From the NCBI GenBank assembly GCA_026936335.1, contig JAPMXV010000024.1, positions 62,001 to 126,000 of the forward strand: 64,000 nucleotides of DNA, read 5' to 3'. Below the pieces are notes generated by a model. It had not been told where the DNA came from, did no database searches, and worked only from the letters and a program-made list of their open reading frames with translations. Of this stretch, positions 7,708-41,003 are shown piece by piece. A program made the translations under genes and the position numbers. Every line of letters starts with the position of its first letter. Within the stretch, counting starts at the first letter, position 1. This stretch comes from Mantamonas sphyraenae STR306 (taxonomy: Eukaryota; Protista; CRuMs).

Positions 7708-8185
7708 ATGGCAATGGTTGGCGCTGTGGGCGATGCCCAGGACATTGACGAGACGGTGACTGCTCTGTGTGAGACGCACCGCGCAGACATTGGCGAGTAC
7801 GAGACGTTTGAGCCCGTGTCGTATGCCTCGCAGGTAGGTGTGGATGGGTGTGCAATGCCATAGGTGGCATGCGGGGATGTGCGACGGTGTGACACATGTT
7901 CTGTGCGACTCGTGTGCATGTGAGGGCGTGGAGAGCGGCAAGAGGGTTTTGCTGGGAAACGTCAAGAGGCCACGTTTTTTGGGCCGGAGGTGCTGACACG
8001 CGTGACACGCACACACAAACACATGGGCATGCAAACAGGTCGTGGCAGGAATCAACTACTTTGTCAAGATCAACGTGGGCGACGAGCACGTGCACGTGCG
8101 CATCTACAAGCCCCTGAGCGGCGATTCCGAGTTTGTGTCGAAGGAGACGGGTCACACCGCCGACGATGAGATCACTCATTTTTGA
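7708..8185 (+). CDS. Type-1 cystatin (stefin), join(7708..7833,8039..8185), 90 aa
   Basis: Spliced translation MAMVGAVGDAQDIDETVTALCETHRADIGEYETFEPVSYASQ|VVAGINYFVKINVGDEHVHVRIYKPLSGDSEFVSKETGHTADDEITHF* restores the QVVAG motif. Donor GTAGGT at 7834, branch GCTGAC at ~7992, acceptor ACAG at 8038. Confidence 0.92.
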
Positions 8186-8212: not shown

Positions 8213-8520
8213 TCAATAGAACACTCGGATCTCCACCACTTCACCCGACATGCCATGTTCCATGGCCTCCTGCAGTTCCAGCTGGTTGGTCATGTTGCAC
8301 CAGTCGCCGTCTTCGTCCGGGTACTTCATGGAAAAGTCGTCGTGGTCCAGCTGCAATGCCGTCTGCACTGCCAGCCGGAACGTGTCCATGTGTGTGTTGA
8401 CAGGCACCTGCACCCGTTTGGTGGATCCGTTGTAATTCAACACCAGCTTGTACGTCACCACAGGTCCCACACTTGTATCCGGCTGCTCCTGCTGCTCTTT
8501 CTGTTGTTGTTGTTGATCCT

Positions 8521-8568
<48 letters not shown>

Positions 8569-9097
8569 CCTGTGCTTTCGTGTTGGGTCTTCGTCGGAAG
8601 CCGTCGTCTGCCGTCTTGCCGTGCAGCAGAAGGCTCTCGCTAGCAAGATCGTCCTCCATCAGACTCCATTCGCCAAACTTTGCCCTGCTTGGCCGTGCGC
8701 TGTTGTTGTTGTTGTTGTTGTTTGTACCCGTGTGTGCATGCCCGTCTTTCTGTGTGGTTGTTGTCGTTGTCTCGTGCCCTTGTTCCCCCGGCTGTGTTTG
8801 TTGTTGCGGCACTGTAAACGTCACAACGGCGCTCCCATGCTCGCCGTTTGCGTCCAATGTGTCCCTGTAGTCAATCTTTTCCCAATCGTCGTCCTCTCCA
8901 TCGTTGTGTGGCCCTCCCTTGTTTGCCCTGGCTCCCGTGGACGACGGCGTTCCGTCCTCACCGTCCGAATCGACCTCGGAAATGGCAATGGTCCCACCGC
9001 CGTTCTCGTTGCCGTTTGCGCTGTTGTTGGACGTCCCATCCGTCCCGTCTTGTCCCTCGGGCGTCGTTCCAGCCAGCCAGTTCCACACACTGCTCAT
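8213..9097 (-). CDS. Protein with disordered N-terminus, LIR/AIM-like motif and C-terminal PB1 domain (PB1-A)
   Basis: C-terminal KLVLNYNGSTKRVQV...FSMKYPDEDGDWCNMTNQLELQEAM is a PB1 with an OPCA acidic motif. EDDDWEKI fits acidic-[W]xx[I]. Likely ATG at 9097 (MSSVWNWL). Confidence 0.8.
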
Positions 9098-9273
9098 GGC
9101 TGTGGATGTGTCCTCCGTCTGCTTTGCGGCACCCAGCGCAAGTGAAGTCGCGTGCCCCCCAACACAGAGACGCACACAAACACAGACTCCACACAGCCAA
9201 CCCAGCCGCACGTACACATACACACACACACACAGTCAACCCATCCATTCATTTTAAGAAAACAACCACAACC

Positions 9274-10656
9274 ATGGAACACGACTGGGAAATCCTCGAG
9301 CTGGACGGCGGCACGGACGCACTGAGTGAAGACGACGGCGACGTGCCCATTGTCACCTTTCATGGCGACTGGGAGAGTGTGGCACAATCTGTGTCGGAAG
9401 AGGTGGGTGTCATGTGGGGGTGGCAGAGGAGGGGAAAGGCGGGCGGGGACGGTGAAGAAGAATCGAGGCCCCAAACCCAAGAACAACCAAAAAGCTCACA
9501 CCAGACGCACTGACGCTTGCGTACACACTGGGACTGGACTCGCACAGATCACTGTGGACCGGCTGACGGTGGAGCAGCATGGCGACGAGACGTACATCTC
9601 GCTGGGGGCGTCGAGTCTGCTGCAGAGCGTCTCGGGAATTCAAGCGGAAACGCAAACGTTGCCGCCGGCGACCAGTTCGGCGTCCACATCGACGGACGAG
9701 ACGCAGACGGCCGAGGCAGGCGTCGGGGCAGTGCAGGAAACCACCGAGATGGGTGTGGGTGGCTCTGCAAGTGATGCCGATGAGAATGAGGACGAGGAGA
9801 CGGCGGAAAACGGCCAGGAGGTGAGCGATGAGTTGCTTCGCTTCAAATTCGACTACCAGGGCGACAAGCGACGCATTGCGGTGAGTTTGCAGGAGCTTGT
9901 GTTTGGCGAGGTGTGTGCACGCGTGGCTGCGTTGTATCGGCTGAACAACGTGCAGGCGTCTCGCATGCACTTTGAGTATGCGGACGAGGACGGGGATGTG
10001 TGCAAGATCACCTCGGATGCCGAGCTGGTGGAGAGTGTGCGTCACCAACGCGAACTGGGCCAATCTCCACTGCGCTTCTCCGTGTGTGTGGGCACAGGCA
10101 GCATCACGGTGTGCATTGGCAGCAGCGCAGGGACGCAAACCACAGGGGTGGAGGTGGAGGTGGTGGAACAAGTGGCCATGGAGGACAGTGCCACCAACAC
10201 AGAGGCAGAAGAGGTGGCAACAGCAGCAGCAGGCGACGATGCAAGCACACAGACGGAAGAGGAGGAGGGCAAGCAGACAGAGGAGACAGGGGTGGGCACT
10301 GGGTTGGCCCTGTGTGTGGAGTTGGACCAGGGGGCACAGACAGACGACACAAACGGCAACGAGGAGAGTGAGGCCCAACGAAAGGCAGCAGCAACCAAAT
10401 TGGCTCGCAATGGGACGGTGGTGCGCCACGGAAGCAACGTGGTGATGGCAAAAACCAACAAGTCGGTGGTCATCCGTTGTGGCTCCACCGTTGTCATCAC
10501 CGGTGGCTGCCAGGTCAGGGTGTCGTCGCCAAAGACGAGCAATGGCAGTGCAGCAGCAGCAGCAGCAGCAGCAGTGGTGGCACAAAGGCAAAGGCAGGGG
10601 TGCAAATCAAGCGCACTCACCAGGGTCAAAGCGTGGTCATTCCCAAGCGACTCTGA
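9274..10656 (+). CDS. LIR/AIM + PB1 + multi-TQT protein (PB1-B); exon 1 9274..9402, intron 9403..9547; probable true stop TGA 10654-10656 after a 1-nt indel near 10550
   Basis: Exon 1 MEHDWEILE...GDWESVAQSVSEE; donor GTGGGT, branch CACTGAC, acceptor CACAG in phase with the 9326 ORF. PB1: LRFKFDYQGDKRRIAV...FEYADEDGDVCKITSDAELVESV. Repeated xxTQT motifs. Confidence 0.65.
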
Positions 10657-10789
10657 TGGGCTTGCTTTGTGTTGTGAGAGCATGAGCATGGCGTGGATGA
10701 TCCAACCCACCCATGGCTTCCCACTTTGGAAAATGAAAGGAAGATGTTTGTGTGAGCACGCCCTTGGCATCCAACCCAGCCCCAAGAGA

Positions 10790-13700
10790 ATGAGTGCGAA
10801 GGAAGCCGGCGAGTCGAAGCAGCCGCCACAATGGCATGAGGAAGACGACCGCACGTGGGCCAAGGAGACGCTGGGGCTGAGTGACGAAGCGTTGGAGGAC
10901 CGGGAGGCTGTGTTTGCGGCGGTGTTGGAGCAGCTGTGGTCGCATCGCAAAGAGTCGAGCGACAGCCGGAAAGAGGACGACAGCAAGGAGGCAGACGGCG
11001 ACAAAGAGGCAGACACGGGCAGCAAGACACGCAAAGACGACCCAAAGGGCACGAAAAAGGGCAAAAGCGCACAAGGCAAGGCAAAGGGCGGGGCCAAGGG
11101 CGAGAGGGACGCTTCAAGTCAGGAGGAAAAGGAGCCCGCGAGCAACAGCGGCGAGGACGGAGACGCAGATGATGAGGGCAAGGATGGGAAGGAGGGGGAG
11201 GGTGGGCAGGGGAAGGAGGAGGAGGAGGAGGAGGAGGAGACAAAGAGCAGTTCGAATCGAGGTGGAGGAGGGAGGAAGAAGCGTGGGTGGCGCACGAAGA
11301 AGCTGGAAGCGGAGCTTGCAGCTCAGCCGCCGCTTCCGACAGCATTGCTACCGACGCGGGACGTGCATGCGATGGTGGAAGGGATGGCAGAGGTGGAATT
11401 GGGCAAGGGGGAGAACCGGGTGCAATTGCACGAGCATCAGGTGCAAGGGTTGCACTTTCTGTGCCGTGCGCTGTTTGCTCGAAGTCGCAGCTGTGCGGCG
11501 GCAGCGATGCTTCACCACGAAATGGGTTTGGGCAAGACGCTGACGGCACTGATGATGGTACTGCGTGTGTTGCCAGCGGTGACGGGCGACCGGCGTCCAG
11601 TGCTGTGGATTACACGCGGTCAATTGGTGGACCAGCTTGCCAAGGAGGTGCGCAAGTTCTTTGGCACCTCCGTGGCACCCGTGCTCAGCGTCACCTCGGC
11701 CAACCTCAACTCATTGAGGCGACACCATGTGCAGGAGGCCTCCATTGTGGTGGTGGCCAACACGGCCATGCTGGTGGCGTACAAACGCGTGTTTGGTGAC
11801 AAGCCCAAGAGCAAGGATGGCTGGCGATTCCCAAGCAATTGTCAGGATTTGGACAGGAGCACAGCCAACAGCAAACGCGGGTCGGCATTGATTCTGAACC
11901 CGGGCAGGCTGTACTCGGCCATTGTCATGGATGAGGTGGGCGAGTATGCACGCAACGCAAACAGCCAGATCACGCAGGCGCTGTCGTACGTGTCGACCAC
12001 CCCGGGTCACTGGGGTTGCTTTGGCCTGTCGGGAACACCCATTCACAACGGAAACGCCGACGTGGTGGTCGAACAGAAGGCCATGGGCTACTTTGAACGC
12101 AACGACCCTCTCTTCTACACCGAGTGGATGACCTCCAAGGAGAGCGAAGAATACTCGTTTGGCACGTTTATGCACACGTGCTTTGTCCACGACGTGGCTG
12201 TGTTTGTGGACAAAAACGATGCCAACAGCAAAGCCATGGTGGTGGAGACAAACATGGATGGCCTGGCTGCCACACGCAAGGCAGAAGGCGAGGCTGGCAA
12301 TGGCGACGACGATGAGGATGACGATGACGAGGAGGAGGAGGAGGAGGAGGAAGAAGAGGACGATATGGAGCTTTTGGCGGCGGCAATGCAGGACAAGAAG
12401 GATCGGCTTGCCGCCAAGCGCAGGATGCACGGTGCGCGGGATGGGAACGACAGCGACTCGTCGGGGTACATGTCATCGGACAGCGACGACAACCAGCATG
12501 TGGATCGGAAACGAAAGAGGGAAAGCAGTGAGGAGGAGGAGGAGGACAGCAGCAGCGAGGAGGAGGTGGAAATTGAGATGGAGCTGACGATGCCAGAAGG
12601 GATAGAGAACCTGAGCGCAGAGGAGCAACAGGCCGTGATGCACGCGCAAGTGGCACAACAATTGCAAGCGATGAACAACATGGGCAGTGGGCAGGATGGG
12701 AAGGAGGGCAGTGACAGCGACAGCGACAGTGATGGCAGTTCGGACAGCGATAGTTGGTTTGATTCGGACGACAGTTCGTTGGAGGGGTCGGACGATGAAG
12801 GAGCAGGAGCAGGGGCAGGGAAAGAGGCAACAAGCAGCAGCAGCAGCAGCAGCAGTAGTGGTGGTCGTGGTGTGGAGGATGGGATGGTCACGGAAAAGGC
12901 TGAGCAACAGGAGGGGCAGGAGGAAGGGAAGGTGGAGAAGAAGGAGGAGCAGGACGAGGAGCAGGAAGGCAGTAGCAAGCAGCCAGCAGCCAAGAGGCAG
13001 AAGCGAATGCTGCGTATGGCGCATGTGCAGTTCAAGGCTGTGGTGCACTCGTGTTCAGACGCAGAAATGGAGGCGTTGAAGGTGCTGTTGAAGGAGACAG
13101 ACACTCTGTTCAGCAAGGTGGAGGAACGCAAGGAGGAACGTGCGGCACGCGAGGCAGAGGAGAAAAAGGCAAAGGCAGCAGCAAGGAAAGCCGGCAAGGG
13201 GGCAAGCAAGGGGGCCAAAGGGGCCAAGGGCAAGGGCAAGGGCAAGGCGTTGCAAGGACCGAGTGTGGATGTGAACAGTCTGGATGTGGAAGACCTGGAC
13301 GAGGACGTAGATGCGTCGTTGGGTGCGGCGGGAGGGGATGTGAGCGCCATTGAAGCGGCAGACGGGGTGGACGAGGAGGAGAAGTTGCTTGCCATTCGAG
13401 GGATGGCATTGCGGATGGCAATGCGAGCTCAACAGACGTCGTCATGCATCCTGCAATTGCAAGGGAACACGGACCTGCCCGAAGGATTGCGCGAGGGACT
13501 GAGCTGGGCGGACTGTTCAAAGATGCGCATTGCCAAGGGTCTAATCGCCAAGTGGGCGAGTGGAGAGGAGGAGAAAGTGGTGATTGGCACACGGTTCACC
13601 AAGGAGATTCCTCTGATTGCGGAGGAGTTGGAACGGTGGATGCAGGGGCGAGGGTGGAGCAGCACGGGTGTGGTGCAGTACCACGGAAGCATGTCAGAGA

Positions 13701-14191
13701 AGGAGAGGCAGGCGTCGTTGGATGCGTTCAAAGGCTCGCGTGCTGTCAAGGTGATGGTGTTGAACATGAAGTCGGGAGGCATCGGGTTGAATCTCACCGA
13801 AGCACACACGATGATCATCTGGTCGCCGTTTCACACGAGTGCACTCACGAAACAGACGATGAAGCGAGTGCACAGGATCAACAGCACACACAACGTGCGC
13901 ATTTGGTTCCTGATCAACCGGTACGTGGAGTGGTACATGGAAATCTGGTCGCGGTTGAAGGTGAAGGACGCCCTTTGGCAGCAGCTGGAAGACGATCCGC
14001 GACTGGAGGAGGTGGTGGACATGCTCAACGATCGCAAGTACGGCGTGGCACGGGAGTGTACGTTGACACGGCTGGCAAAGTCTCGTCTGCTGTTGGAGAT
14101 GGAGCAGAAGGAGTTGTACGGGAAGGAGCCACCCAGAGCCATTGAACACGTCATCATGGACACGGCACAGGGTGGCAAGTTGGCAGAGTGA
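10790..14191 (+). CDS. Divergent SNF2-family helicase/ATPase with a large acidic insertion
   Basis: LHEHQVQGLHFL (Q motif), HHEMGLGKT (I), IVMDEVG (II), LSGTPIHN (III), KVVIGTRF (IV), YHGSMSEKERQASLDAF, SGGIGLNLTEA (V), QTMKRVHRINS (VI). In-frame ATG at 10790 (MSAKEAG). Confidence 0.85.
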   Translation: MSAKEAGESKQPPQWHEEDDRTWAKETLGLSDEALEDREAVFAAVLEQLWSHRKESSDSRKEDDSKEADGDKEADTGSKTRKDDPKGTKKGKSAQGKAKGGAKGERDASSQEEKEPASNSGEDGDADDEGKDGKEGEGGQGKEEEEEEEETKSSSNRGGGGRKKRGWRTKKLEAELAAQPPLPTALLPTRDVHAMVEGMAEVELGKGENRVQLHEHQVQGLHFLCRALFARSRSCAAAAMLHHEMGLGKTLTALMMVLRVLPAVTGDRRPVLWITRGQLVDQLAKEVRKFFGTSVAPVLSVTSANLNSLRRHHVQEASIVVVANTAMLVAYKRVFGDKPKSKDGWRFPSNCQDLDRSTANSKRGSALILNPGRLYSAIVMDEVGEYARNANSQITQALSYVSTTPGHWGCFGLSGTPIHNGNADVVVEQKAMGYFERNDPLFYTEWMTSKESEEYSFGTFMHTCFVHDVAVFVDKNDANSKAMVVETNMDGLAATRKAEGEAGNGDDDEDDDDEEEEEEEEEEDDMELLAAAMQDKKDRLAAKRRMHGARDGNDSDSSGYMSSDSDDNQHVDRKRKRESSEEEEEDSSSEEEVEIEMELTMPEGIENLSAEEQQAVMHAQVAQQLQAMNNMGSGQDGKEGSDSDSDSDGSSDSDSWFDSDDSSLEGSDDEGAGAGAGKEATSSSSSSSSSGGRGVEDGMVTEKAEQQEGQEEGKVEKKEEQDEEQEGSSKQPAAKRQKRMLRMAHVQFKAVVHSCSDAEMEALKVLLKETDTLFSKVEERKEERAAREAEEKKAKAAARKAGKGASKGAKGAKGKGKGKALQGPSVDVNSLDVEDLDEDVDASLGAAGGDVSAIEAADGVDEEEKLLAIRGMALRMAMRAQQTSSCILQLQGNTDLPEGLREGLSWADCSKMRIAKGLIAKWASGEEEKVVIGTRFTKEIPLIAEELERWMQGRGWSSTGVVQYHGSMSEKERQASLDAFKGSRAVKVMVLNMKSGGIGLNLTEAHTMIIWSPFHTSALTKQTMKRVHRINSTHNVRIWFLINRYVEWYMEIWSRLKVKDALWQQLEDDPRLEEVVDMLNDRKYGVARECTLTRLAKSRLLLEMEQKELYGKEPPRAIEHVIMDTAQGGKLAE

Positions 14192-26498: not shown

Positions 26499-26611
26499 TG
26501 GGCGGCGATATCACATGCGAACAGCAGGGTCAGAGCAAGCATTGTGATGCAAAGGTTGGTGGACGTGTGCCTCTCCAGGATCGGGGGCGTGATGTGGTTC
26601 CAGCGCGGCAT
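26499..26611 (-). pseudogene. 5' fragment (signal-peptide region only) of the EGF multi-pass membrane protein gene
   Basis: MPRWNHITPPILERHTSTNLCITMLALTLLFACDIAAQ, then loss of homology and a stop at 26465. Several substitutions relative to the intact copies. Confidence 0.8.
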
Positions 26612-26719
26612 GTGTGCTTGCCTGCAATTTCGGTGGCGCACGTGGTGGACAGATCGGTGGTGGTGGTGGCGATGGGGAGATGGGTGGGAATGCGTGTGTT
26701 GGTGGATGGCTGATGTGTG

Positions 26720-26835
26720 GTATTTTCGCGGAAGAGTGGTGGGGGGAAACTCGGAACGGTGTCGGGTGCAGAACTCGGAACTCGGAACACAGGGCAGTTG
26801 GGGTTCAAAAGGCGCACTCACGCGCACTCACCCAA
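26720..26835. promoter_or_regulatory. Putative bidirectional promoter between the NBR1-like and EGF-membrane genes (repeated in each unit)
   Basis: Short head-to-head spacer containing AACTCGGAAC x3 (26748-26788) and GCGCACTCAC x2 (26812-26831). Confidence 0.35.
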
Positions 26836-27006
26836 CTTGTCATCACAAAAACACACACACTCGGATAACCCAAGAGGACGAGTAACGATACAACACAACG
26901 ACTGCGAATACAGACAGCAGCAAGTGAAAGTGAGAAACAAGTGAAAGCGAAAGCGAGCAAACGAAACGAAATCAAGCAAACCCAAAACAACCAAAAACGC
27001 AACTCG

Positions 27007-27431
27007 ATGACGATGAGCAAGAGTGGAAACAACACCAACGAGACGACGATGACAAAGAACAGCAGCAGCAGCAGCAACAGCGACGTGAAGACCATGGTGT
27101 CTGTAAAGGCAACTGTGGGAGCGGAGACACGGCGCTTCGGGGTGTGGAGCGAGAGGCTGTGCGAGGAAGGAGGACTGGATGGACTGGTGCAGCAGATTGC
27201 AGAAGTGTTTGGGAAGAAGGAGGAGAGGATGAGCCGAATGGTGATGTCGTACGCAGACGAAGACGGAGACTGGGTGCGTATGAGCAGCGAGAAGGAGCTG
27301 GGACACGCGGTGGAACTGTGTGTGATGCAGAGCAAGCAGAGCGGGCGTGAGCCTGGGGTTCTGCGGGTGAAGCTGATGACACGAGTTGCAGCACGACGAG
27401 CAGCCAAGGCAGCCGAGGAGTCGATGATGCC

Positions 27432-27467
<36 letters not shown>

Positions 27468-28545
27468 GAAGAGTGGCAAGAAGAGTGGCAAGACCACAAA
27501 GAAGCAGAAGACGACGAGCAAGACAGGGACAAAGAAGGGCGGTGTGAAGAGCAAGAAGATGGGAAAGGAAGTGGAGGAGGAAGTGGAGGAGGAAGCGGCT
27601 GTGGTTGGAGCAGGAGACCTTTCAGAGAGCGTGCAGGAACGGCTGGGAAAGCTGGAAGCTGTGGATGTGGAGCGTGTGCTTGGACACATGCCACGACGCA
27701 AAGTGCCTGGACATGTGCTGGACAAGATTGCCATGGCTCGGATGGACAAGTTGGAGGCTGGAGAACTGCTGACGTATGAAGCGAAGCAGCAGGAGCAGGA
27801 ACAGGAGGAGGAGGAGCAGCATGAATGTCATGGCCATGGACGTCGTGGTGGTGGTCATCGCGGTGGTCATCGTGGTGGTCATCGAGGTTGCCATCTGCAT
27901 CGCCATCACGGACATCATCACGGACATCATCACGGTGGACGACATGGGGAACGAGGACAGAGTCGACACAAGGCTCGGTTTGTGAGCCATGTGAGCTATG
28001 GGACGGATGCTCGGGTGCAGTGTGGACGCAAGTTTACAAAGACGTGGCGTCTGCGGAACGAGAGCGAAGAAGCATGGCCTGCGGGAGCGCAGGTGGTGTT
28101 TGTGAGCAAGAAGAACGGAGACGCAATGGGAGCAAGCGAGGCTGTGCCTGTGGATGTGGTGGCTGAGGCAGGAGAAGAGGTGGACGTGAGTGTGGAGATG
28201 GAAGCACCTGAGGCAGCTGGAAGCTACAGCGGGTTCTGGAGGATGGCAGATGGGGAAGGGAAGAAGTTTGGACAACGATTCCGATGCCAGATTGTGGCAG
28301 TGGAGGAAGAGGTGGAGGAAGAGGTGGAGGATGAGGATGAGGAAGAGGAGGATGAGAGCAGCGGAAGCAGCAGCTCTTCTTCGTCTGAGAGCGAGTCTGA
28401 GTCTGAGATGGACTCTGAGAAGGAGTGGGAGAGCGAGCTGGCGACACTTGCGCTGGTGGGTCTGACGGATCGAAAGGCATGTGTGGACGCACTGGAAGCA
28501 TGTGAGGGAGATCTGCAGGCAGTGATCCAGTCGCTGCGTGGATAG
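27007..28545 (+). CDS. NBR1: NBR1-like selective-autophagy receptor, copy a (PB1, Lys-rich, His/Gly-rich, FW domain, acidic, UBA)
   Basis: PB1 VKATVGAETRRF..MSYADEDGDWVRMSSEKEL. FW domain ARFVSHVSY..FTKTWRLRNESEEAWP..EEVDVSVEMEAP..GSYSGFWRM..GKKFGQR. C-terminal UBA-like WESELATLALVGLTDRKACVDALEACEGDLQAVIQSL. Confidence 0.85.
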
Positions 28546-28753
28546 GCTGAAGAGAGAGTGTACAGGGATTGAGAATGAATCGCAAAGGACGAACCCGGGG
28601 AGGTTGAGACTCCTCCCCACACAACCAACAACAACAAACAACAACAACAACACAACAAGGTTGATTGCATTTGAGAGCGTCTTGAACAGAGTGGAGAGTG
28701 GGAAGTGGAGGAGGAGGAGAGGAAGTAGAGCTGAGTGTGTTGGCCAGGTCGTT

Positions 28754-31700
28754 TCATTGCAGATCCGAGACGGTGTCCACAAAGAAGGCTGGGATGAGTG
28801 CGACAAAGGCAAGGACCAGAGTGAACAGGGAAAAGTCAAACACAAAGGCCACCGTGAAAATCATGTTGAAGAGGTTGGAGAAGAACTTGACGGCACGTGC
28901 ACCGCGGCCTGTCTTGAGTTCAAGCATAGCATGGCCCTGGGCGTCTTGTGCCAGGTCCAGGACGGGTGGGTTGTTGAGCACCTCGACAAACTTGCCTGCG
29001 ATAAGTGTGGGACCGGGGGCAATCATAAAGATGAGCGCACTGCTACGCCCAACATTGGCAATGACGGCCTCCTGTTGGGAATCGACATCCCACTTGTCGT
29101 CGTCGTACTTGCGGGATCGAGGCAGGATGCTAAACGCCTTGACCATGTACGAGTTCCACAGGCCCACAGCAAGCATGAGCAGGCGGAACACACCAAAGAG
29201 CACTTTGACCACGATGACGTGAGGGATGAGCTGGATGAGTGCACGACCCAGTCGCACGGCAGCAGATGGGTTCTTCTGCGCCTGCTCCTCGGTTTGTTCA
29301 CAGGTGATGGTTCCCATGGCCTTGTGCACCAGCGGATCATAGCCCGTAAACATCTCCCAGTGGGCGTAGATAAAGAGGGACAGCACCACGAGGGTAAACA
29401 CAAAGCCAAAGTTGCGTGCCTCCAAGTCGGTGGCCCCACAGTTGCGTCCGCCTCCGAGACCCAGGCTCAAGTCGCCAATGGTGACAATGATGACCTGGGA
29501 GACGTAAAACACGGCAGCAGTGGCCAGATTGGCCACCAGAGTTGCAAAGGCCTTGCCCTTGGCTGTGGTCTGGCGCTTCTTCAGGCTCTTGAAGTACATG
29601 GAGAGCAGGAGGAGGAACTCGCGCTTGAGCATGAGACGCAGGAACAGGGCACCCATGAGGACCAGGATGGGGGCAATGAGAGTGGCAAATCCGTTGCAGT
29701 TCCACTCTGTGGACACCAGCGTAAAGTCGATGGAACGCAGAAAGGTGATGAACAGCCGCACGAGTTCGCCAAACCCACCCAGGGCCAGCTCGATGGAGGG
29801 GTACACCAGCTCAAAGTCATAATCAGGCAGAAACTTGCTCAAGGAGGTTGCCATCAGCGATACGTTGAAGATGGTCTTGACGACACCCGCAAAGAGGGTG
29901 ATCAGGTTGATGATCACGATGAAAATGACACTGCCGATGCTCAGGTGATGGCAGGATCCGTCGTCCTGCCCCGTGTGTGCATACGGTGAGGATGATGACG
30001 ATGATGACGAGGTTGGCAGTTGGGTTTGGATCTGACTCATTTCGACGGAATCCCCGCCCGCGGAGGCCATCTCGGCAGCAGCAGCCTTGGCAGCCTCGTG
30101 TTGCTGCTTGGCCATGGCAGCCTCTTCGCGAGCCTGCTTCTCCAGGGCCAGGTTGTGCATGTTGACACCAGAGACCTGCATGTCACGCAGGATGTGGTAT
30201 TCCACGAATCGGAAGCCCGAGTCGAAAAAGTGCTCGATGGCATGGTAGTGGCGCACGGGGTCCATCTTGCCACCAATCGCCGCTCCAATAAACACATAGG
30301 CCACAAAGACACATGCCACAATGATAAACACAGTGGGCACGGTGGATTCGTTGGGGTCGGCAATCTCCACCCGGACCTGGAAGCGACGCTGTTGAGTCGA
30401 CGTGGTGACCCGTCCGCTGTTGCCATACCTTCCCGTGATGCCCACGGATACGTAGAGGCGCATGTTGTCTGAAGAGGCAGGCATGCTCTTGGGGTCGACC
30501 TTGAGGGTGGTGTTGCCCACCAGAGGGCCTCGCACGGTGGCCACGCAATCGGTGCAGTTGAAGCCCTCGACCCACACCCATGGCATCAACAGGGGTCTGT
30601 GGTCCGGTTGAATCCGGGGAGGACTTCCCCACTTGGCCATCAGGACCACGTCACCCGCGAATGCACTTGGGCTCCGCGAGGAGCTCTCTGTGATGGCAGC
30701 CAGTTTGTCCTCTGCGTCGTAGGTCCAAAAGGCGGCCGCTGGGGCAGTGTGCACCCACAGACGCGAGTTGGAACGGGATCCCTGGATCCAAAAGGTGACG
30801 AGCTCGCTCTCGTTTGTGTGGAGGCCAAGGAAGGAGAAGCTGTTGTACAGCTCGCGCATGTCTTGTGTGCGATTGGCGTAGTGGCAGTTGATGCCACTGG
30901 TGCCTGGGTTGCAGACACAGACGCCAAGGTCGGAACACGTGCCCTTGCACTTGTCCATGCAGTTTGGAGAGCGTGTGACCTTGACCTCGACGGGACAGGA
31001 CATGTCCAAACCCGACGATGGGGTGCTGATCTTCAGAAGCTCGGTGACCTGATTGCGTCGGTACAGGTACAGGCATTCTTCCACGTACCGCGGCCTGCGG
31101 AATGCGTTGTAGAGTTGGTTGAGGGTAACGGTGCGTGGCACACCGGGGACCACATCGTCGAAAGTGTAGCTGTCACGCCGTTTCATGTCGTTGCCACACA
31201 TCATCTCGTACTGGACGTCGATGGAATCGCGGCATTCGTACTGGGAGAGACGATTGAGTTGCACAGTCAGATAGTTGGTGGTGGCTGGCCCAGGGTGCTG
31301 AATGTACACCGTTCGATTGACGTGTCCGACGGCATAGGTACGAGACACGCCCGAGAAGGGTTGCTCCTGATTCCGATGTTCACACACGGTGCCCAAGTAG
31401 CCGGGGTTGCAAGTGCACACGTAGTTGTAGGATGTGTCGTTGTGGATGACCAGTCCACGTCCGAAGCATGCAGGTCTGAGGCTGACAGAGAGTGTGGCGT
31501 TGCACGGGGTGTCGGGCGAGGTGTTGACCAAGGAGAAATCGACAGTGAGATCCGAGGCCGCGTCCTCAGCCAACACGTAAGAGCGACAACCACACGAGAA
31601 GGGTCTGTCCAGAAGCCAGTAGGAATACTCGTTGAACCCGGTGTAGCTGTGGGGCCATCGGTTGGCGCAGTAGCCCGCCTGGGTGTCGTTGTACGAGGTG

Positions 31701-32568
31701 CCACAAAACCCAGTCACCCCCATGCGGCAGGATGGGTTTGAAAACGACGTCGAGTACGAATAGTAGAATGGTTGGCCACCGGGTAGGAAGCGTGGCTTGT
31801 AGGAAAAGTAGGTGGCATTGCCTGGGGCCAACTCGACCGTGGTGGAAAAGGACGAGGTCAACGTGACGTTGGCTGTGACGTCCACAGGGGCAGGGGAGGC
31901 ACATGTGGGGCCAGCCCAGCCTGGGAAACAGCGACAGTAGGCGTAGGTCTGGGCATCCACCTCACCGTGACCTGGGGTGCACACAGGCTGGGTGTCGGCG
32001 GTGATGGAGAACGCGCAGGACGCCGTGTTTTGTGTGGAGGCATACACGTTGGCTTGGATCAGGTAGGTGATGGTGGTGGCACATGTGTAGCCATTGCACC
32101 CTGACCTTGCCTTTGGGTAGAAGTTGTAGGTGAACGGGGAGGTGCCGACGCTGCGGGTGGCCTCGCTGCAGCGGCGGTCGCTGTTCATGTCTGCCACGGA
32201 TCCTGGGTAGCATGAAGAGAACACAAGGACCGATGGCGTGTATTGACTGAGTGTGGGGAATGGCATGTGGGTCAGTGAAGTGAATGTAAGAGTGGGGAGG
32301 GGAGGCGGATCCCGGACCAGATGTCAAGCGGAGGATGGAGTTTGCGGCCCACCTACCATCCGGTGCGGTTGAAGATTGTGAGCGACAGCCGGACGTCTTG
32401 GTTCCTGTCGATGGTAATGGCCCATGTCTGGTTGGAACGGCCGTTGGAGTCCGTGTACGTTGGATAGGTGGCGTCGATGGTGACGGTTGACGGAAAAGGC
32501 GCCGGAATTTCAGTGATGGTCGCTTGGGCGGCGACATCGCATGCGAACAGCAGGGTCAAAGCAAGCAT
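28754..32568 (-). CDS. Signal-peptide, EGF-repeat multi-pass membrane protein, copy 1; intron 32247..32356 (alternative ATG at 32637)
   Basis: Signal peptide MLALTLLFACDVAAQ. Three EGF-like motifs (CRCFPGWAGPTC, CTCNPGYLGTVC, CKGTCSDLGVCVCNPGTSGINC). Many NxS/T sequons. One TM, a loop, then several more TMs. Phase-2 intron GTAGGT..CACTGAC..CTCAG. Confidence 0.8.
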
Positions 32569-33032
32569 TGTGATCCCAAGGTTGGTGGCGGTGTGCCTCC
32601 CCAGGATCGGGGGTGTGATGTGGTTCCAGCGCGGCATGTGTGCTTGCTTGCAATTTCGGTGGCGCACGTGGTGGACAGATCGGTGGTGGTGGTGGCGATG
32701 GGGAGATGGGTGGGAATGCGTGTGTTGGTGGATGGCTGATGTGTGGTATTTTCGCGGAAGAGTGGTGGGGGGAAACTCGGAACGGTGTCGGGTGCAGAAC
32801 TCGGAACTCGGAACACAGGGCAGTTGGGGTTCAAAAGGCGCACTCACGCGCACTCACCCAACTTGTCATCACAAAAACACACACACTCGGATAACCCAAG
32901 AGGACGAGTAACGATACAACACAACGACTGCGAATACAGACAGCAGCAAGTGAAAGTGAGAAACAAGTGAAAGCGAAAGCGAGCAAACGAAACGAAATCA
33001 AGCAAACCCAAAACAACCAAAAACGCAACTCG

Positions 33033-33457
33033 ATGACGATGAGCAAGAGTGGAAACAACACCAACGAGACGACGATGACAAAGAACAGCAGCAGCAGCAG
33101 CAACAGCGACGTGAAGACCATGGTGTCTGTAAAGGCAACTGTGGGAGCGGAGACACGGCGCTTCGGGGTGTGGAGCGAGAGGCTGTGCGAGGAAGGAGGA
33201 CTGGATGGACTGGTGCAGCAGATTGCAGAAGTGTTTGGGAAGAAGGAGGAGAGGATGAGCCGAATGGTGATGTCGTACGCAGACGAAGACGGAGACTGGG
33301 TGCGTATGAGCAGCGAGAAGGAGCTGGGACACGCGGTGGAACTGTGTGTGATGCAGAGCAAGCAGAGCGGGCGTGAGCCTGGGGTTCTGCGGGTGAAGCT
33401 GATGACACGAGTTGCAGCACGACGAGCAGCCAAGGCAGCCGAGGAGTCGATGATGCC

Positions 33458-33502
<45 letters not shown>

Positions 33503-34581
33503 GAAGAGTGGCAAGAAGAGTGGCAAGACCACAAAGAAGCAGAAGACGACGAGCAAGACAGGGACAAAGAAGGGCGGTGTGAAGAGCAAGAAGATGGGAA
33601 AGGAAGTGGAGGAGGAAGTGGAGGAGGAAGCGGCTGTGGTTGGAGCAGGAGACCTTTCAGAGAGCGTGCAGGAACGGCTGGGAAAGCTGGAAGCTGTGGA
33701 TGTGGAGCGTGTGCTTGGACACATGCCACGACGCAAAGTGCCTGGACATGTGCTGGACAAGATTGCCATGGCTCGGATGGACAAGTTGGAGGCTGGAGAA
33801 CTGCTGACGTATGAAGCGAAGCAGCAGGAGCAGGAACAGGAGGAGGAGGAGCAGCATGAATGTCATGGCCATGGACGTCGTGGTGGTGGTCATCGCGGTG
33901 GTCATCGTGGTGGTCATCGAGGTTGCCATCTGCATCGCCATCACGGACATCATCACGGACATCATCACGGTGGACGACATGGGGAACGAGGACAGAGTCG
34001 ACACAAGGCTCGGTTTGTGAGCCATGTGAGCTATGGGACGGATGCCGGGGGTGCAGTGTGGACGCAAGTTTACAAAGACGTGGCGTCTGCGGAACGAGAG
34101 CGAAGAAGCATGGCCTGCGGGAGCGCAGGTGGTGTTTGTGAGCAAGAAGAACGGAGACGCAATGGGAGCAAGCGAGGCTGTGCCTGTGGATGTGGTGGCT
34201 GAGGCAGGAGAAGAGGTGGACGTGAGTGTGGAGATGGAAGCACCTGAGGCAGCTGGAAGCTACAGCGGGTTCTGGAGGATGGCAGATGGGGAAGGGAAGA
34301 AGTTTGGACAACGATTCCGATGCCAGATTGTGGCAGTGGAGGAAGAGGTGGAGGAAGAGGTGGAGGATGAGGATGAGGAAGAGGAGGATGAGAGCAGCGG
34401 AAGCAGCAGCTCTTCTTCGTCTGAGAGCGAGTCTGAGTCTGAGATGGACTCTGAGAAGGAGTGGGAGAGCGAGCTGGCGACACTTGCGCTGGTGGGTCTG
34501 ACGGATCGAAAGGCATGTGTGGACGCACTGGAAGCATGTGAGGGAGATCTGCAGGCAGTGATCCAGTCGCTGCGTGGATAG
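33033..34581 (+). pseudogene. NBR1: NBR1-like copy b with a +1 frameshift at ~34046-34051 (G run; possibly a sequencing error)
   Basis: Matches copy a apart from a longer AGC tract and GATGCCGGGGGTGCAG instead of GATGCTCGGGTGCAG, which splits it into ORFs 32967..34202 and 34033..34581. Confidence 0.75.
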
Positions 34582-34791
34582 GCTGAAGAGAGAGTGTACA
34601 GGGATTGAGAATGAATCGCAAAGGACGAACCCGGGGAGGTTGAGACTCCCTCCCACACACAACCAACAACAACAAACAACAACAACAACACAACAAGGTT
34701 GATTGCATTTGAGAGCGTCTTGAACAGAGTGGAGAGTGGGAAGTGGAGGAGGAGGAGAGGAAGTAGAGCTGAGTGTGTTGGCCAGGTCGTT

Positions 34792-37700
34792 TCATTGCAG
34801 ATCCGAGACGGTGTCCACAAAGAAGGCTGGGATGAGTGCGACAAAGGCAAGGACCAGAGTGAACAGGGAAAAGTCAAACACAAAGGCCACCGTGAAAATC
34901 ATGTTGAAGAGGTTGGAGAAGAACTTGACGGCACGTGCACCGCGGCCTGTCTTGAGTTCAAGCATAGCATGGCCCTGGGCGTCTTGTGCCAGGTCCAGGA
35001 CGGGTGGGTTGTTGAGCACCTCGACAAACTTGCCTGCGATAAGTGTGGGACCGGGGGCAATCATAAAGATGAGCGCACTGCTACGCCCAACATTGGCAAT
35101 GACGGCCTCCTGTTGGGAATCGACATCCCACTTGTCGTCGTCGTACTTGCGGGATCGAGGCAGGATGCTAAACGCCTTGACCATGTACGAGTTCCACAGG
35201 CCCACAGCAAGCATGAGCAGGCGGAACACACCAAAGAGCACTTTGACCACGATGACGTGAGGGATGAGCTGGATGAGTGCACGACCCAGTCGCACGGCAG
35301 CAGATGGGTTCTTCTGCGCCTGCTCCTCGGTTTGTTCACAGGTGATGGTTCCCATGGCCTTGTGCACCAGCGGATCATAGCCCGTAAACATCTCCCAGTG
35401 GGCGTAGATAAAGAGGGACAGCACCACGAGGGTAAACACAAAGCCAAAGTTGCGTGCCTCCAAGTCGGTGGCCCCACAGTTGCGTCCGCCTCCGAGACCC
35501 AGGCTCAAGTCGCCAATGGTGACAATGATGACCTGGGAGACGTAAAACACGGCAGCAGTGGCCAGATTGGCCACCAGAGTTGCAAAGGCCTTGCCCTTGG
35601 CTGTGGTCTGGCGCTTCTTCAGGCTCTTGAAGTACATGGAGAGCAGGAGGAGGAACTCGCGCTTGAGCATGAGACGCAGGAACAGGGCACCCATGAGGAC
35701 CAGGATGGGGGCAATGAGAGTGGCAAATCCGTTGCAGTTCCACTCTGTGGACACCAGCGTAAAGTCGATGGAACGCAGAAAGGTGATGAACAGCCGCACG
35801 AGTTCGCCAAACCCACCCAGGGCCAGCTCGATGGAGGGGTACACCAGCTCAAAGTCATAATCAGGCAGAAACTTGCTCAAGGAGGTTGCCATCAGCGATA
35901 CGTTGAAGATGGTCTTGACGACACCCGCAAAGAGGGTGATCAGGTTGATGATCACGATGAAAATGACACTGCCGATGCTCAGGTGATGGCAGGATCCGTC
36001 GTCCTGCCCCGTGTGTGCATACGGTGAGGATGATGACGATGATGACGAGGTTGGCAGTTGGGTTTGGATCTGACTCATTTCGACGGAATCCCCGCCCGCG
36101 GAGGCCATCTCGGCAGCAGCAGCCTTGGCAGCCTCGTGTTGCTGCTTGGCCATGGCAGCCTCTTCGCGAGCCTGCTTCTCCAGGGCCAGGTTGTGCATGT
36201 TGACACCAGAGACCTGCATGTCACGCAGGATGTGGTATTCCACGAATCGGAAGCCCGAGTCGAAAAAGTGCTCGATGGCATGGTAGTGGCGCACGGGGTC
36301 CATCTTGCCACCAATCGCCGCTCCAATAAACACATAGGCCACAAAGACACATGCCACAATGATAAACACAGTGGGCACGGTGGATTCGTTGGGGTCGGCA
36401 ATCTCCACCCGGACCTGGAAGCGACGCTGTTGAGTCGACGTGGTGACCCGTCCGCTGTTGCCATACCTTCCCGTGATGCCCACGGATACGTAGAGGCGCA
36501 TGTTGTCTGAAGAGGCAGGCATGCTCTTGGGGTCGACCTTGAGGGTGGTGTTGCCCACCAGAGGGCCTCGCACGGTGGCCACGCAATCGGTGCAGTTGAA
36601 GCCCTCGACCCACACCCATGGCATCAACAGGGGTCTGTGGTCCGGTTGAATCCGGGGAGGACTTCCCCACTTGGCCATCAGGACCACGTCACCCGCGAAT
36701 GCACTTGGGCTCCGCGAGGAGCTCTCTGTGATGGCAGCCAGTTTGTCCTCTGCGTCGTAGGTCCAAAAGGCGGCCGCTGGGGCAGTGTGCACCCACAGAC
36801 GCGAGTTGGAACGGGATCCCTGGATCCAAAAGGTGACGAGCTCGCTCTCGTTTGTGTGGAGGCCAAGGAAGGAGAAGCTGTTGTACAGCTCGCGCATGTC
36901 TTGTGTGCGATTGGCGTAGTGGCAGTTGATGCCACTGGTGCCTGGGTTGCAGACACAGACGCCAAGGTCGGAACACGTGCCCTTGCACTTGTCCATGCAG
37001 TTTGGAGAGCGTGTGACCTTGACCTCGACGGGACAGGACATGTCCAAACCCGACGATGGGGTGCTGATCTTCAGAAGCTCGGTGACCTGATTGCGTCGGT
37101 ACAGGTACAGGCATTCTTCCACGTACCGCGGCCTGCGGAATGCGTTGTAGAGTTGGTTGAGGGTAACGGTGCGTGGCACACCGGGGACCACATCGTCGAA
37201 AGTGTAGCTGTCACGCCGTTTCATGTCGTTGCCACACATCATCTCGTACTGGACGTCGATGGAATCGCGGCATTCGTACTGGGAGAGACGATTGAGTTGC
37301 ACAGTCAGATAGTTGGTGGTGGCTGGCCCAGGGTGCTGAATGTACACCGTTCGATTGACGTGTCCGACGGCATAGGTACGAGACACGCCCGAGAAGGGTT
37401 GCTCCTGATTCCGATGTTCACACACGGTGCCCAAGTAGCCGGGGTTGCAAGTGCACACGTAGTTGTAGGATGTGTCGTTGTGGATGACCAGTCCACGTCC
37501 GAAGCATGCAGGTCTGAGGCTGACAGAGAGTGTGGCGTTGCACGGGGTGTCGGGCGAGGTGTTGACCAAGGAGAAATCGACAGTGAGATCCGAGGCCGCG
37601 TCCTCAGCCAACACGTAAGAGCGACAACCACACGAGAAGGGTCTGTCCAGAAGCCAGTAGGAATACTCGTTGAACCCGGTGTAGCTGTGGGGCCATCGGT

Positions 37701-38606
37701 TGGCGCAGTAGCCCGCCTGGGTGTCGTTGTACGAGGTGCCACAAAACCCAGTCACCCCCATGCGGCAGGATGGGTTTGAAAACGACGTCGAGTACGAATA
37801 GTAGAATGGTTGGCCACCGGGTAGGAAGCGTGGCTTGTAGGAAAAGTAGGTGGCATTGCCTGGGGCCAACTCGACCGTGGTGGAAAAGGACGAGGTCAAC
37901 GTGACGTTGGCTGTGACGTCCACAGGGGCAGGGGAGGCACATGTGGGGCCAGCCCAGCCTGGGAAACAGCGACAGTAGGCGTAGGTCTGGGCATCCACCT
38001 CACCGTGACCTGGGGTGCACACAGGCTGGGTGTCGGCGGTGATGGAGAACGCGCAGGACGCCGTGTTTTGTGTGGAGGCATACACGTTGGCTTGGATCAG
38101 GTAGGTGATGGTGGTGGCACATGTGTAGCCATTGCACCCTGACCTTGCCTTTGGGTAGAAGTTGTAGGTGAACGGGGAGGTGCCGACGCTGCGGGTGGCC
38201 TCGCTGCAGCGGCGGTCGCTGTTCATGTCTGCCACGGATCCTGGGTAGCATGAAGAGAACACAAGGACCGATGGCGTGTATTGACTGAGTGTGGGGAATG
38301 GCATGTGGGTCAGTGAAGTGAATGTAAGAGTGGGGAGGGGAGGCGGATCCCGGACCAGATGTCAAGCGGAGGATGGAGTTTGCGGCCCACCTACCATCCG
38401 GTGCGGTTGAAGATTGTGAGCGACAGCCGGACGTCTTGGTTCCTGTCGATGGTAATGGCCCATGTCTGGTTGGAACGGCCGTTGGAGTCCGTGTACGTTG
38501 GATAGGTGGCGTCGATGGTGACGGTTGACGGAAAAGGCGCCGGAATTTCAGTGATGGTCGCTTGGGCGGCGACATCGCATGCGAACAGCAGGGTCAAAGC
38601 AAGCAT
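34792..38606 (-). CDS. Signal-peptide, EGF-repeat multi-pass membrane protein, copy 2; intron 38285..38394
   Basis: Translation in the ORF track matches copy 1 (1170-aa exon-2 ORF plus upstream exon). Confidence 0.8.
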
Positions 38607-39064
38607 TGTGATCCCAAGGTTGGTGGCGGTGTGCCTCCCCAGGATCGGGGGTGTGATGTGGTTCCAGCGCGGCATGTGTGCTTGCTTGCAATTTCGGTGG
38701 TGCACGTGGTGGACAGATCGGTGGTGGTGGTGGCGATGGGGAGATGGGTGGGAATGTGTGTGTTGGTGGATGGCTGATGTGTGGTATTTTCGCGGAAGAG
38801 TGGTGGGGGGAAACTCGGAACGGTGTCGGGTGCAGAACTCGGAACTCGGAACACAGGGCAGTTGGGGTTCAAAAGGCGCACTCACGCGCACTCACCCAAC
38901 TTGTCATCACAAAAACACACACACTCGGATAACCCAAGAGGACGAGTAACGATACAACACAACGACTGCGAATACAGACAGCAGCGCAAGTGAAACAAGT
39001 GATAGCGAAAGCGAGCAAACGAAACGAAATCAAGCAAACCCAAAACAACCAAAAACGCAACTCG

Positions 39065-40600
39065 ATGACGATGAGCAAGAGTGGAAACAACACCAACGAG
39101 ACGACGATGACAAAGAACAGCACCACCAGCAACAACAGCGACGTGAAGACCATGGTGTCTGTAAAGGCAACTGTGGGAGCGGAGACACGGCGCTTCGGGG
39201 TGTGGAGCGAGAGGCTGTGCGAGGAAGGAGGACTGGATGGACTGGTGCAGCAGATTGCAGAAGTGTTTGGGAAGAAGGAGGAGAGGATGAGCCGAATGGT
39301 GATGTCGTACGCAGACGAAGACGGAGACTGGGTGCGTATGAGCAGCGAGAAGGAGCTGGGACACGCGGTGGAACTGTGTGTGATGCAGAGCAAGCAGAGC
39401 GGGCGTGAGCCTGGGGTTCTGCGGGTGAAGCTGATGACACGAGTTGCAGCACGACGAGCAGCCAAGGCAGCCGAGGAGTCGATGATGCCAAGCAGCAGCA
39501 GCAGCAGCAAGAAGAGTGGCAAGAAGAGTGGCAAGACCACAAAGAAGCAGAAGACGACGAGCAAGACAGGGACAAAGAAGGGCGGTGTGAAGAGCAAGAA
39601 GATGGGAAAGGAAGTGGAGGAGGAAGTGGAGGAGGAAGCGGCTGTGGTTGGAGCAGGAGACCTTTCAGAGAGCGTGCAGGAACGGCTGGGAAAGCTGGAA
39701 GCTGTGGATGTGGAGCGTGTGCTTGGACACATGCCACGACGCAAAGTGCCTGGACATGTGCTGGACAAGATTGCCATGGCTCGGATGGACAAGGTGGAGG
39801 CTGGAGAACTGCTGACGTATGAAGCGAAGCAGCAGGAGCAGGAGCAGGAACAGGAGGAGGAGCAGCATGAATGTCATGGCCATGGACGCCGTGGTGGTGG
39901 TCATCGCGGTGGTCATCGTGGTGGTCATCGTGGTGGTCATCGAGGTTGCCATCTGCATCGCCATCACGGACATCATCACGGACATCATCACGGTGGACGA
40001 CATGGGGAACGAGGACAGAGTCGACACAAGGCTCGGTTTGTGAGCCATGTGAGCTATGGGACGGATGCTCGGGTGCAGTGTGGACGCAAGTTTACAAAGA
40101 CGTGGCGTCTGCGGAACGAGAGCGAAGAAGCATGGCCTGCGGGAGCGCAGGTGGTGTTTGTGAGCAAGAAGAACGGAGACGCAATGGGAGCAAGCGAGGC
40201 TGTGCCTGTGGATGTGGTGGCTGAGGCAGGGGAAGAGGTGGACGTGAGTGTGGAGATGGAAGCACCTGAGGCAGCTGGAAGCTACAGCGGGTTCTGGAGG
40301 ATGGCAGATGGGGAAGGGAAGAAGTTTGGACAACGATTCCGATGCCAGATTGTGGCAGTGGAGGAAGAGGTGGAGGAAGAGGAGGATGAGGAAGAGGAAG
40401 AGGAGGATGAGAGCAGCGGAAGCAGCAGCTCTTCTTCGTCTGAGAGCGAATCTGAGTCTGAGATGGACTCTGAGAAGGAGTGGGAGAGCGAGCTGGCGAC
40501 ACTTGCGCTGGTGGGTCTGACGGATCGAAAGGCATGTGTGGACGCACTGGAAGCATGTGAGGGAGATCTGCAGGCAGTGATCCAGTCGCTGCGTGGATGA
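39065..40600 (+). CDS. NBR1: NBR1-like receptor, copy c (intact, slightly diverged)
   Basis: Same domains as copy a. Differences: KNSTTSNN vs KNSSSSSN, 6 vs 11 Ser, an extra HRGG unit, TGA vs TAG stop. Confidence 0.85.
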   Translation: MTMSKSGNNTNETTMTKNSTTSNNSDVKTMVSVKATVGAETRRFGVWSERLCEEGGLDGLVQQIAEVFGKKEERMSRMVMSYADEDGDWVRMSSEKELGHAVELCVMQSKQSGREPGVLRVKLMTRVAARRAAKAAEESMMPSSSSSSKKSGKKSGKTTKKQKTTSKTGTKKGGVKSKKMGKEVEEEVEEEAAVVGAGDLSESVQERLGKLEAVDVERVLGHMPRRKVPGHVLDKIAMARMDKVEAGELLTYEAKQQEQEQEQEEEQHECHGHGRRGGGHRGGHRGGHRGGHRGCHLHRHHGHHHGHHHGGRHGERGQSRHKARFVSHVSYGTDARVQCGRKFTKTWRLRNESEEAWPAGAQVVFVSKKNGDAMGASEAVPVDVVAEAGEEVDVSVEMEAPEAAGSYSGFWRMADGEGKKFGQRFRCQIVAVEEEVEEEEDEEEEEEDESSGSSSSSSSESESESEMDSEKEWESELATLALVGLTDRKACVDALEACEGDLQAVIQSLRG

Positions 40601-40810
40601 GGCTGAAGAGAGAGTGTACAGGGATTGAGAATGAATCGCAAAGGACGAACCCGGGGAGGTTGAGACTCCTCCCCACACAACCAACAACAACAAACAACAA
40701 CAACGACGACAACAAGGTTGATTGCATTTGAGAGCGTCTTGAACAGAGTGGAGAGTGGGAAGTGGAGGAGGAGGAGAGGAAGTAGAGCTGAGTGTGTTGG
40801 CCAGGTCGTT

Positions 40811-41003
40811 TCATTGCAGATCCGAGACGGTGTCCACAAAGAAGGCTGGGATGAGTGCGACAAAGGCAAGGACCAGAGTGAACAGAGAAAAGTCAAACAC
40901 AAAGGCCACCGTGAAAATCATGTTGAAGAGGTTGGAGAAAAACTTGACGGCACGTGCACCGCGGCCTGTCTTGAGTTCAAGCATAGCATGGCCCTGGGCG
41001 TCT
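40811..41003 (-). pseudogene. 3' fragment of the EGF multi-pass membrane protein gene (last ~63 codons)
   Basis: Encodes ...DAQGHAMLELKTGRG...FFVDTVSDLQ* and is cut off at 41003 by the LRR gene. Confidence 0.85.

Follow-up and report, generated by a model that had tools for sequence, protein, structure and literature searches.

What do two divergently transcribed PB1-domain genes of the protist Mantamonas sphyraenae STR306 encode, and which partners do their products join? The genes, here called PB1-A and PB1-B, lie in a 64,000-nucleotide stretch of contig JAPMXV010000024.1 (positions 62,001 to 126,000; G000:C24:62001-126000), hereafter the window, from a genome of 25 Mb in 78 contigs with ~59% G+C. 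The initial annotation read them as small adaptors carrying LC3-interacting region (LIR) motifs, which would complete a LIR-less NBR1-like gene ~16 kb away and thereby form a selective-autophagy receptor divided among separate proteins. The locus thus raises three questions: (i) where the two genes begin and end; (ii) which binding faces their PB1 domains present; and (iii) which partner their tryptophan motifs serve. With about even confidence, we read the locus as an old pair of PB1 paralogues with a common N-terminal tryptophan-motif module, in which PB1-B would be a PB1-SNF2 protein and PB1-A its acidic-face partner.

The head-to-head arrangement was described correctly at the outset, with start codons at 9097 (-) and 9274 (+) and a Pfam PB1 match of E ~1e-11 in each gene. 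The PF00564 scores are 43.5 bits for PB1-A and 42.8 bits for PB1-B, and the Pfam gathering cut-off is 23.6. Coding potential was evaluated by log-odds of codon usage, with eight long window genes as the training set. PB1-A is a single open reading frame (ORF; 8216-9097, minus strand, stop codon at 8213-8215), with a codon score of +0.34 in its own frame and negative scores in the other two, and the Pfam profile covers residues 220-282 (E 3e-11). A look-up of existing annotation with the exact PB1-A sequence retrieved no record, and a look-up of RNA sequencing runs returned none. The 176 bp between the two start codons are presumed to hold a shared promoter and both 5' untranslated regions. The two genes have a common layout, namely, an acidic, probably disordered N-terminus, two WxxL/I/V motifs (at residues 5-8 and then as DWE-x-I/V) and a PB1 domain, with which PB1-A ends; in PB1-B, the PB1 domain carries both binding faces and is followed by an acidic linker rich in TQT motifs. 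The N-termini are colinear through M-x3-W-x2-L at residues 1-8, a GGT-A-SE-D-D block (9/15 identical) and then DWE-x-[IV]. A recent inverted duplication was rejected because the two PB1 domains share only 27% identity and neither is the best paralogue of the other; the genes are best read as an ancient, divergently transcribed paralogue pair.

The end of PB1-B had been placed at 10656. Its start at ATG 9274, its PB1 domain and its motifs were retained, but its extent was not: the frame of the TGA at 10654-10656 carries no coding signal, this codon was rejected as the end of the gene, and the PB1 frame is open to 14191. That frame has no stop from 9548 to 14191 and holds the Pfam domains PB1, SNF2-rel_dom (37.1 bits) and Helicase_C (47.8 bits), the latter two also above the Pfam cut-off. 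The best model comprises three exons (9274-9402, 9548-10461 and 10780-14191) and encodes 1484 residues. The first 43 codons are in another frame than the PB1 domain, and joining them to 9548 therefore requires a GT..AG intron at 9403-9547; the alternative, an unspliced start at ATG 9362, has a codon score of -0.2. Strong coding signal spans 9548 to ~10460 (+0.45) and resumes at ~10790 (+0.56), and the stretch of 10460-10780 scores -0.11, -0.31 and -0.06 over the three frames. The top-scoring GT..AG pair within this stretch, 10462..10779, delimits 318 nt, a multiple of three, so that the frame is kept. The six reference introns used for this comparison were inferred from split conserved genes and have donors of the form GT[AG]NG[TAC], acceptors of the form YAG and lengths of ~130-250 nt. 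A different in-frame intron at 10600-10779 was not adopted, since its donor, GTGCAA, has no G at +5, a base common to all six reference donors, and GTRGGTGT was discarded as a splice-donor signature because it is not enriched. Rather than a small adaptor, PB1-B most likely forms the N-terminal module of a SNF2 ATPase of ~1500 residues, and we regard a single PB1-SNF2 fusion gene as quite probable. PB1 domains elsewhere in the genome are fused to a kinase (L016), ARM repeats (L009), TPR repeats (L023), a RING finger (L011) and a xanthine-dehydrogenase-type enzyme (L019), and an N-terminal PB1 on a SNF2 ATPase is therefore unsurprising here.

The competing gene model, which we consider unlikely, has two genes: a PB1-B of ~350 residues, terminated by way of an intron that shifts the frame, and a separate SNF2 gene with its start at ATG 10790. 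Such an intron is needed because the unspliced PB1-B message has no stop, and one is available, since splicing of a GTGAGA donor at 10674 to the 10779 acceptor would change the frame. The ~320 nt in between look non-coding, the coding signal returns at the first ATG, 10790, and the database matches included no protein with both PB1 and SNF2. Nevertheless, the PB1 frame is free of stops throughout 9548-14191, and by our estimate a spacer of 60-100 codons would be open by chance in ~4-15% of cases. Moreover, the stops of the other frames (10656 and 10685) lie well within the non-coding-like stretch, and the best-scoring splice pair preserves the frame.

The SNF2 part of the probable fusion has the motifs GLGKT, GTPIHN, GGIGLN and RVHRI, so that motifs I, III, V and VI are present; motif II is DEVGE, not DExH, and its usual His is missing. 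The two lobes are separated by an acidic insertion of ~450 residues, and four basic clusters resemble nuclear localisation signals (NLS). The nearest solved relative of the C-lobe is 1z63 (Sulfolobus Rad54-like, E 5.6e-11), with the shorter fragment 1z5z at E 1.6e-11, and that of the N-lobe is 8qy7 (E 7e-6 when searched alone and 6e-10 in a longer query). The PDB entry 8qy7 is titled only 'DEAD/DEAH box helicase'. The best large-library matches of the N-lobe, all of them weak, include a prokaryote-type SNF2 protein with an Mrr nuclease domain (P0013).

Polymerisation of PB1 domains depends on a Lys and a double-Arg finger that face the acidic OPCA motif, type-A PB1 domains bind the ends of p62 filaments, and NBR1-PB1 shortens p62 filaments (PMC6978347). 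The OPCA motif reads YPDEDGDW in PB1-A and YADEDGDV in PB1-B, and both occupy the invariant Y-D-G-D columns of the alignment. PB1-B has the beta1 Lys (FKF), which aligns with K11 of AtNBR1, the RR finger in beta2 and the full OPCA motif. The alignments give the same Lys, RR and OPCA set for the NBR1-like gene and for the canonical NBR1 of the genome, so that both faces, as already claimed for PB1-B and the NBR1-like protein, are retained. PB1-A had been assigned an OPCA motif and Val at the Lys position. The OPCA motif is present; aligned to PKC-zeta by HMMER and to PB1-B by BLAST, PB1-A shows Val at the Lys column, but MAFFT aligns a Lys two residues upstream instead, by means of a two-residue insertion. 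KR stands where RR is expected. PB1-A is thus probably, though not certainly, an acidic-face-only (type A-like) domain, and it is a likely acidic-face partner of the PB1-SNF2 protein.

All motifs quoted in the initial annotation exist, namely, DDDWEKI in PB1-A, HDWEIL and GDWESV in exon 1 of PB1-B and DETYISL in exon 2. They were compared with the published cLIR and xLIR patterns (PMC5119064). DDWEKI of PB1-A and ETYISL of PB1-B fit both patterns, GDWESV of PB1-B fits xLIR and fails cLIR, and HDWEIL of PB1-B fails both at position 1. The probably disordered N-terminal sequence of the pair (348 residues) holds three xLIR and two cLIR matches, and nine neighbouring genes (10,555 residues) hold nine and none, respectively, giving the pair a LIR-pattern density about ten times that of its neighbours. 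Composition-preserving shuffles gave P 6.5e-4 for xLIR and 1.4e-3 for cLIR. The pattern [DE]W[DE]x[LIV] was seen three times in the pair against 0.05 expected and twice elsewhere in 110,000 residues of ORFs (the window plus 20 other loci). Judged by composition only, the motif-bearing parts are 12-30% hydrophobic with a net charge of -14 to -20. These motifs probably serve as functional docking sites that have been retained since the old duplication. Binding of ATG8 by them is plausible. The genome encodes a canonical ATG8 (G000:C52:517884-518195) that is close to solved Atg8 structures (E 4e-51), and this, together with the fit of the motifs to the LIR consensus, makes ATG8 the best single candidate. 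We name it the leading candidate partner of the Trp motifs tentatively.

Docking of a partner other than ATG8 is unlikely as an explanation of the same motifs. The receptor could be of the kinesin-light-chain W-acidic type, the ear domain of an adaptor, or a partner of the SNF2 protein that is nuclear or binds histones. W-acidic motifs serve receptors other than ATG8, and the common core here is D-W-E within strongly acidic tracts. The SNF2 part has NLS-like clusters, and the linker holds four TQT motifs, which are typical of multivalent hub binding. However, three of the four quoted motifs fit xLIR and two the stricter cLIR, and a hydrophobic residue at +3, a requirement of LIR motifs, is present in every copy. 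The four TQT motifs (AETQTL, DETQTA, GTQTTG and STQTEE) lie in the acidic linker around the PB1 domain of PB1-B (9650-10260, plus strand); TQT is the core of binding sites for the dynein light chain LC8.

It is improbable that the motifs arose by chance from Trp in acidic low-complexity sequence and that the two PB1 genes are neighbours for no functional reason. In favour of this view, short motifs are degenerate, divergent gene pairs are numerous in this very compact genome, and library searches found no orthologues in which conservation could be checked. By contrast, the shuffles described above give P of ~1e-3 or lower for the published patterns, the motif is rare among the 110,000 residues of local ORFs, and the motif positions match between the paralogues.

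Orthologues of PB1-A or PB1-B were found neither by word-based searches nor by an exhaustive HMMER search of 1.84 billion representatives; the exons served as separate queries. In the word-based searches, the whole PB1-B/SNF2 exon gave remote SNF2 matches only, and the SNF2 N-lobe alone and PB1-A gave no match. The exhaustive HMMER search with 851 residues that run from PB1 across the junction and through the SNF2 N-lobe returned seven matches (E 1e-7 to 1e-3), none of which has both domains. The ESM Atlas yielded generic small PB1 clusters only, and neither the SNF2 part nor the N-terminal module of either gene had a paralogue in a search of the genome itself.

Several points weigh against reading the locus as an old paralogue pair with a shared motif module and a PB1-SNF2 fusion. 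Codon statistics and six reference introns are the basis of the exon structure and of the fusion, and the proposed donor GTCGGT has a C at +3, unlike the donors of those six. The DEVGE motif II lacks the His, and the ATPase activity is therefore not assured. Neither PB1-A nor PB1-B has the other as its nearest PB1 paralogue, and the colinearity of their N-termini is marginal (shuffle P 0.02-0.07). The DWE pattern was defined only after the sequences had been inspected. Finally, orthologues of the pair were not found in the protein libraries.

The NBR1-like gene of the window had been described as PB1+FW+UBA without a convincing LIR. PB1 (E 1.6e-8) and FW (N_BRCA1_IG, E 8.6e-25) were confirmed, and no ZZ domain was detected in this gene; the UBA is a weak match below the Pfam cut-off (E 0.015). 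The gene has no [WFY]xx[LIV] core against 2.5 expected, an absence that is not significant (P 0.06), and a Trp stands in an acidic Ser-rich tract just before the UBA-like end. The other two tandem copies start near 32.9 kb and 38.9 kb, and a near-identical copy lies on contig C70 (L006). The region of 26500-41000 consists of three tandem units with a period of ~6 kb, each with an NBR1-like gene and a gene for an EGF-like/multi-pass membrane protein of 1170 residues, and the middle NBR1-like copy changes frame ahead of the FW domain. Across the whole genome, at least 26 PB1 domains exceed the Pfam cut-off, and there are at least eight FW/NBR1 matches. A canonical NBR1 with the order PB1-ZZ-ZZ-FW-UBA and an NBR1-type C-terminal UBA is encoded on another contig (L004:1219-3435, minus strand; G000:C52, ~131.7-133.9 kb); its sole acid-flanked aromatic-xx-aliphatic motif is YEDV, between PB1 and ZZ, with none near the UBA. 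The nearest PB1 domain of PB1-A is that of this canonical NBR1 (E 1.6e-9), and that of PB1-B belongs to a PB1-RING protein. For both, the PB1 domain of the window's NBR1-like gene is distant (phmmer E ~1e-3 to 1e-4) and no closer than other PB1 domains are. By a rough estimate from the PB1 and FW counts, some non-NBR1 PB1 gene would lie within 20 kb of an FW locus by chance in ~1 in 5 cases.

These observations bear on the split receptor, in which PB1-A and PB1-B would co-polymerise through PB1 with the LIR-less NBR1-like proteins and so provide them with ATG8 binding in trans, with PB1-A as a cap. PB1-A and the N-terminal half of PB1-B hold PB1 as their only Pfam domain, without FW, ZZ or UBA. 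In favour of the split receptor, the NBR1-like copies combine the Lys, RR and OPCA features with the absence of a [WFY]xx[LIV] core, LIR-consensus motifs occur in both PB1-A and PB1-B, type-A PB1 domains bind the ends of p62 filaments and shorten them (PMC6978347), and p62/NBR1 is a precedent for functions divided among PB1-linked paralogues (PMC9582228). We nevertheless consider the split receptor very unlikely, since no specific similarity or other tie links the PB1 domains of the pair to the NBR1-like one, such a proximity would arise by chance in ~1 in 5 cases, a canonical NBR1 with an acid-flanked YEDV exists elsewhere, the missing LIR core falls short of significance with a Trp left in an acidic tract, and PB1-B is probably a SNF2 ATPase. 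Given the number of PB1 domains in the genome (at least 26) and the canonical NBR1 on another contig, neither a distance of 16 kb nor a need for a LIR in trans singles out this pair, and the NBR1-like array is not specifically implicated in the PB1-A/PB1-B system.

In the paralogue-pair reading that we prefer, the OPCA face of PB1-A would dock on the basic face of PB1-B, and the SNF2 protein would thus gain PB1-A as a small partner or cap. PB1-B may self-associate or join other PB1 proteins in the large PB1 network of the organism, and the common Trp motifs would be docking sites for one shared partner, perhaps ATG8. The fullest version, a SNF2-type motor on a polymerising PB1 with a double LIR module and a small PB1-LIR paralogue as its cap, has only a slight chance of being correct. 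If it were true, an ATP-driven remodeller would be tethered to ATG8 or to NBR1/PB1 condensates, for example, in nucleophagy, condensate remodelling or cargo extraction. Should the fusion be genuine and the motifs recruit ATG8, the locus would supply the first SNF2-type ATPase coupled to the PB1 and LIR toolkit of selective autophagy, and an example of a lineage with a greatly expanded PB1 network that uses PB1 to assemble enzymes; otherwise, it is one more lineage-specific PB1 gene pair. In either case, the corrected gene model of PB1-B matters for annotation or testing. The coordinates of the features are given in Table 1.

Table 1. Features of the PB1-A/PB1-B locus and of the NBR1-like gene, in window coordinates
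Feature	Position	Strand	Basis
PB1-A coding sequence, 294 residues + stop, one exon	8213..9097	-	ORF list, first ATG at 9097, codon score
PB1 domain of PB1-A, residues 205-294	8216..8485	-	Pfam PF00564 E 3e-11, alignments
DDWEKI of PB1-A, residues 70-75	8873..8890	-	fits cLIR and xLIR patterns (PMC5119064)
WNWL of PB1-A, residues 5-8	9074..9085	-	motif scan; colinear with PB1-B WEIL, residues 5-8
Divergent spacer, 176 bp between ATGs	9098..9273	.	ATG positions 9097 (-) and 9274 (+)
PB1-B exon 1 (predicted), 43 residues; WEIL, residues 5-8, and GDWESV, residues 31-36	9274..9402	+	codon score +0.52 in frame
Intron 1 (predicted), 145 nt, GTGGGT...CACAG	9403..9547	+	codon score <=0 in all three frames; splice sites like five other window introns
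PB1-B exon 2 (predicted); ETYISL 9587-9604, PB1 9839-10084, acidic linker with four TQT motifs	9548..10461	+	PB1 E 5e-11, codon score +0.45
Non-coding-like stretch, GTCGGT...CCCAG, best read as in-frame 318-nt intron, else intergenic spacer	10462..10779	+	codon scores, splice-pair ranking
Exon 3 (predicted), divergent SNF2 ATPase; N-lobe 11435-12064, Helicase_C 13538-13882	10780..14191	+	SNF2-rel_dom 2.4e-9, Helicase_C 2e-12
NBR1-like gene, PB1 + FW + weak UBA, first of three tandem copies	26941..28545	+	Pfam

A stefin/cystatin-like gene with two exons (7708-7833 and 8039-8185, plus strand) neighbours PB1-A; a GTAGGT...ACAG intron interrupts its QVVAG motif. The stops of this gene and of PB1-A, on opposite strands, are 27 bp apart, and the convergent 3' ends of the two genes must therefore overlap or nearly do so. 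Among the PB1 fusions, that at L019:3042-8000 (G000:C35, ~216.5-221.5 kb) is one open frame of more than 1650 residues, with an N-terminal PB1 and a complete molybdoflavoenzyme of the xanthine-dehydrogenase/aldehyde-oxidase type (Fer2, FAD_binding_5 and MoCoBD). The plus strand of the window (1-64000) is G-rich nearly throughout (GC skew up to +0.39), irrespective of gene orientation. Read on their own strand, two introns of plus-strand genes are G-rich and four of minus-strand genes are C-rich; the asymmetry therefore belongs to the DNA strand and not to the direction of transcription.

The pair was compared with four known systems. DDWEKI, ETYISL and GDWESV resemble validated W-type LIR and Atg8-interacting motifs (PMC5119064) in their acidic flanks, the low hydrophobicity of their surroundings and their fit to the patterns, whereas HDWEIL is off-pattern and all four are candidate ATG8-binding motifs. 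Within the NBR1 family, defined by FW plus PB1 or ZZ (PMC9582228), the canonical NBR1 at L004 is a full member and the NBR1-like genes of the window share PB1 and FW, but the latter have a His/Gly-rich tract in place of ZZ, a weak UBA and no canonical LIR core; PB1-A and PB1-B, with neither FW nor ZZ, fall outside the family. The SNF2 part recalls the INO80/SWR1-like ATPases with an inter-lobe insertion in its SNF2-rel_dom and Helicase_C domains, its motif set and the ~450 acidic residues between its lobes. It is nevertheless very divergent from the known SNF2 family (E 1e-5 to 1e-11 to solved structures and ~1e-4 at best in the library of 1.84 billion proteins), its motif II is DEVGE, and an N-terminal PB1 occurs in none of the matches. 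Unlike p62/SQSTM1 and NBR1, PB1-A and PB1-B lack ZZ, FW and UBA, PB1-B seemingly carries a SNF2 ATPase, and no orthology to p62 or NBR1 was found. The likeness to the PB1 hetero-oligomers of p62/SQSTM1 and NBR1 (PMC6978347, PMC9582228) lies in the basic Lys/RR and acidic OPCA faces, a type-A partner able to bind filament ends, LIR-type motifs in acidic, probably disordered segments and functions shared among PB1-linked paralogues.

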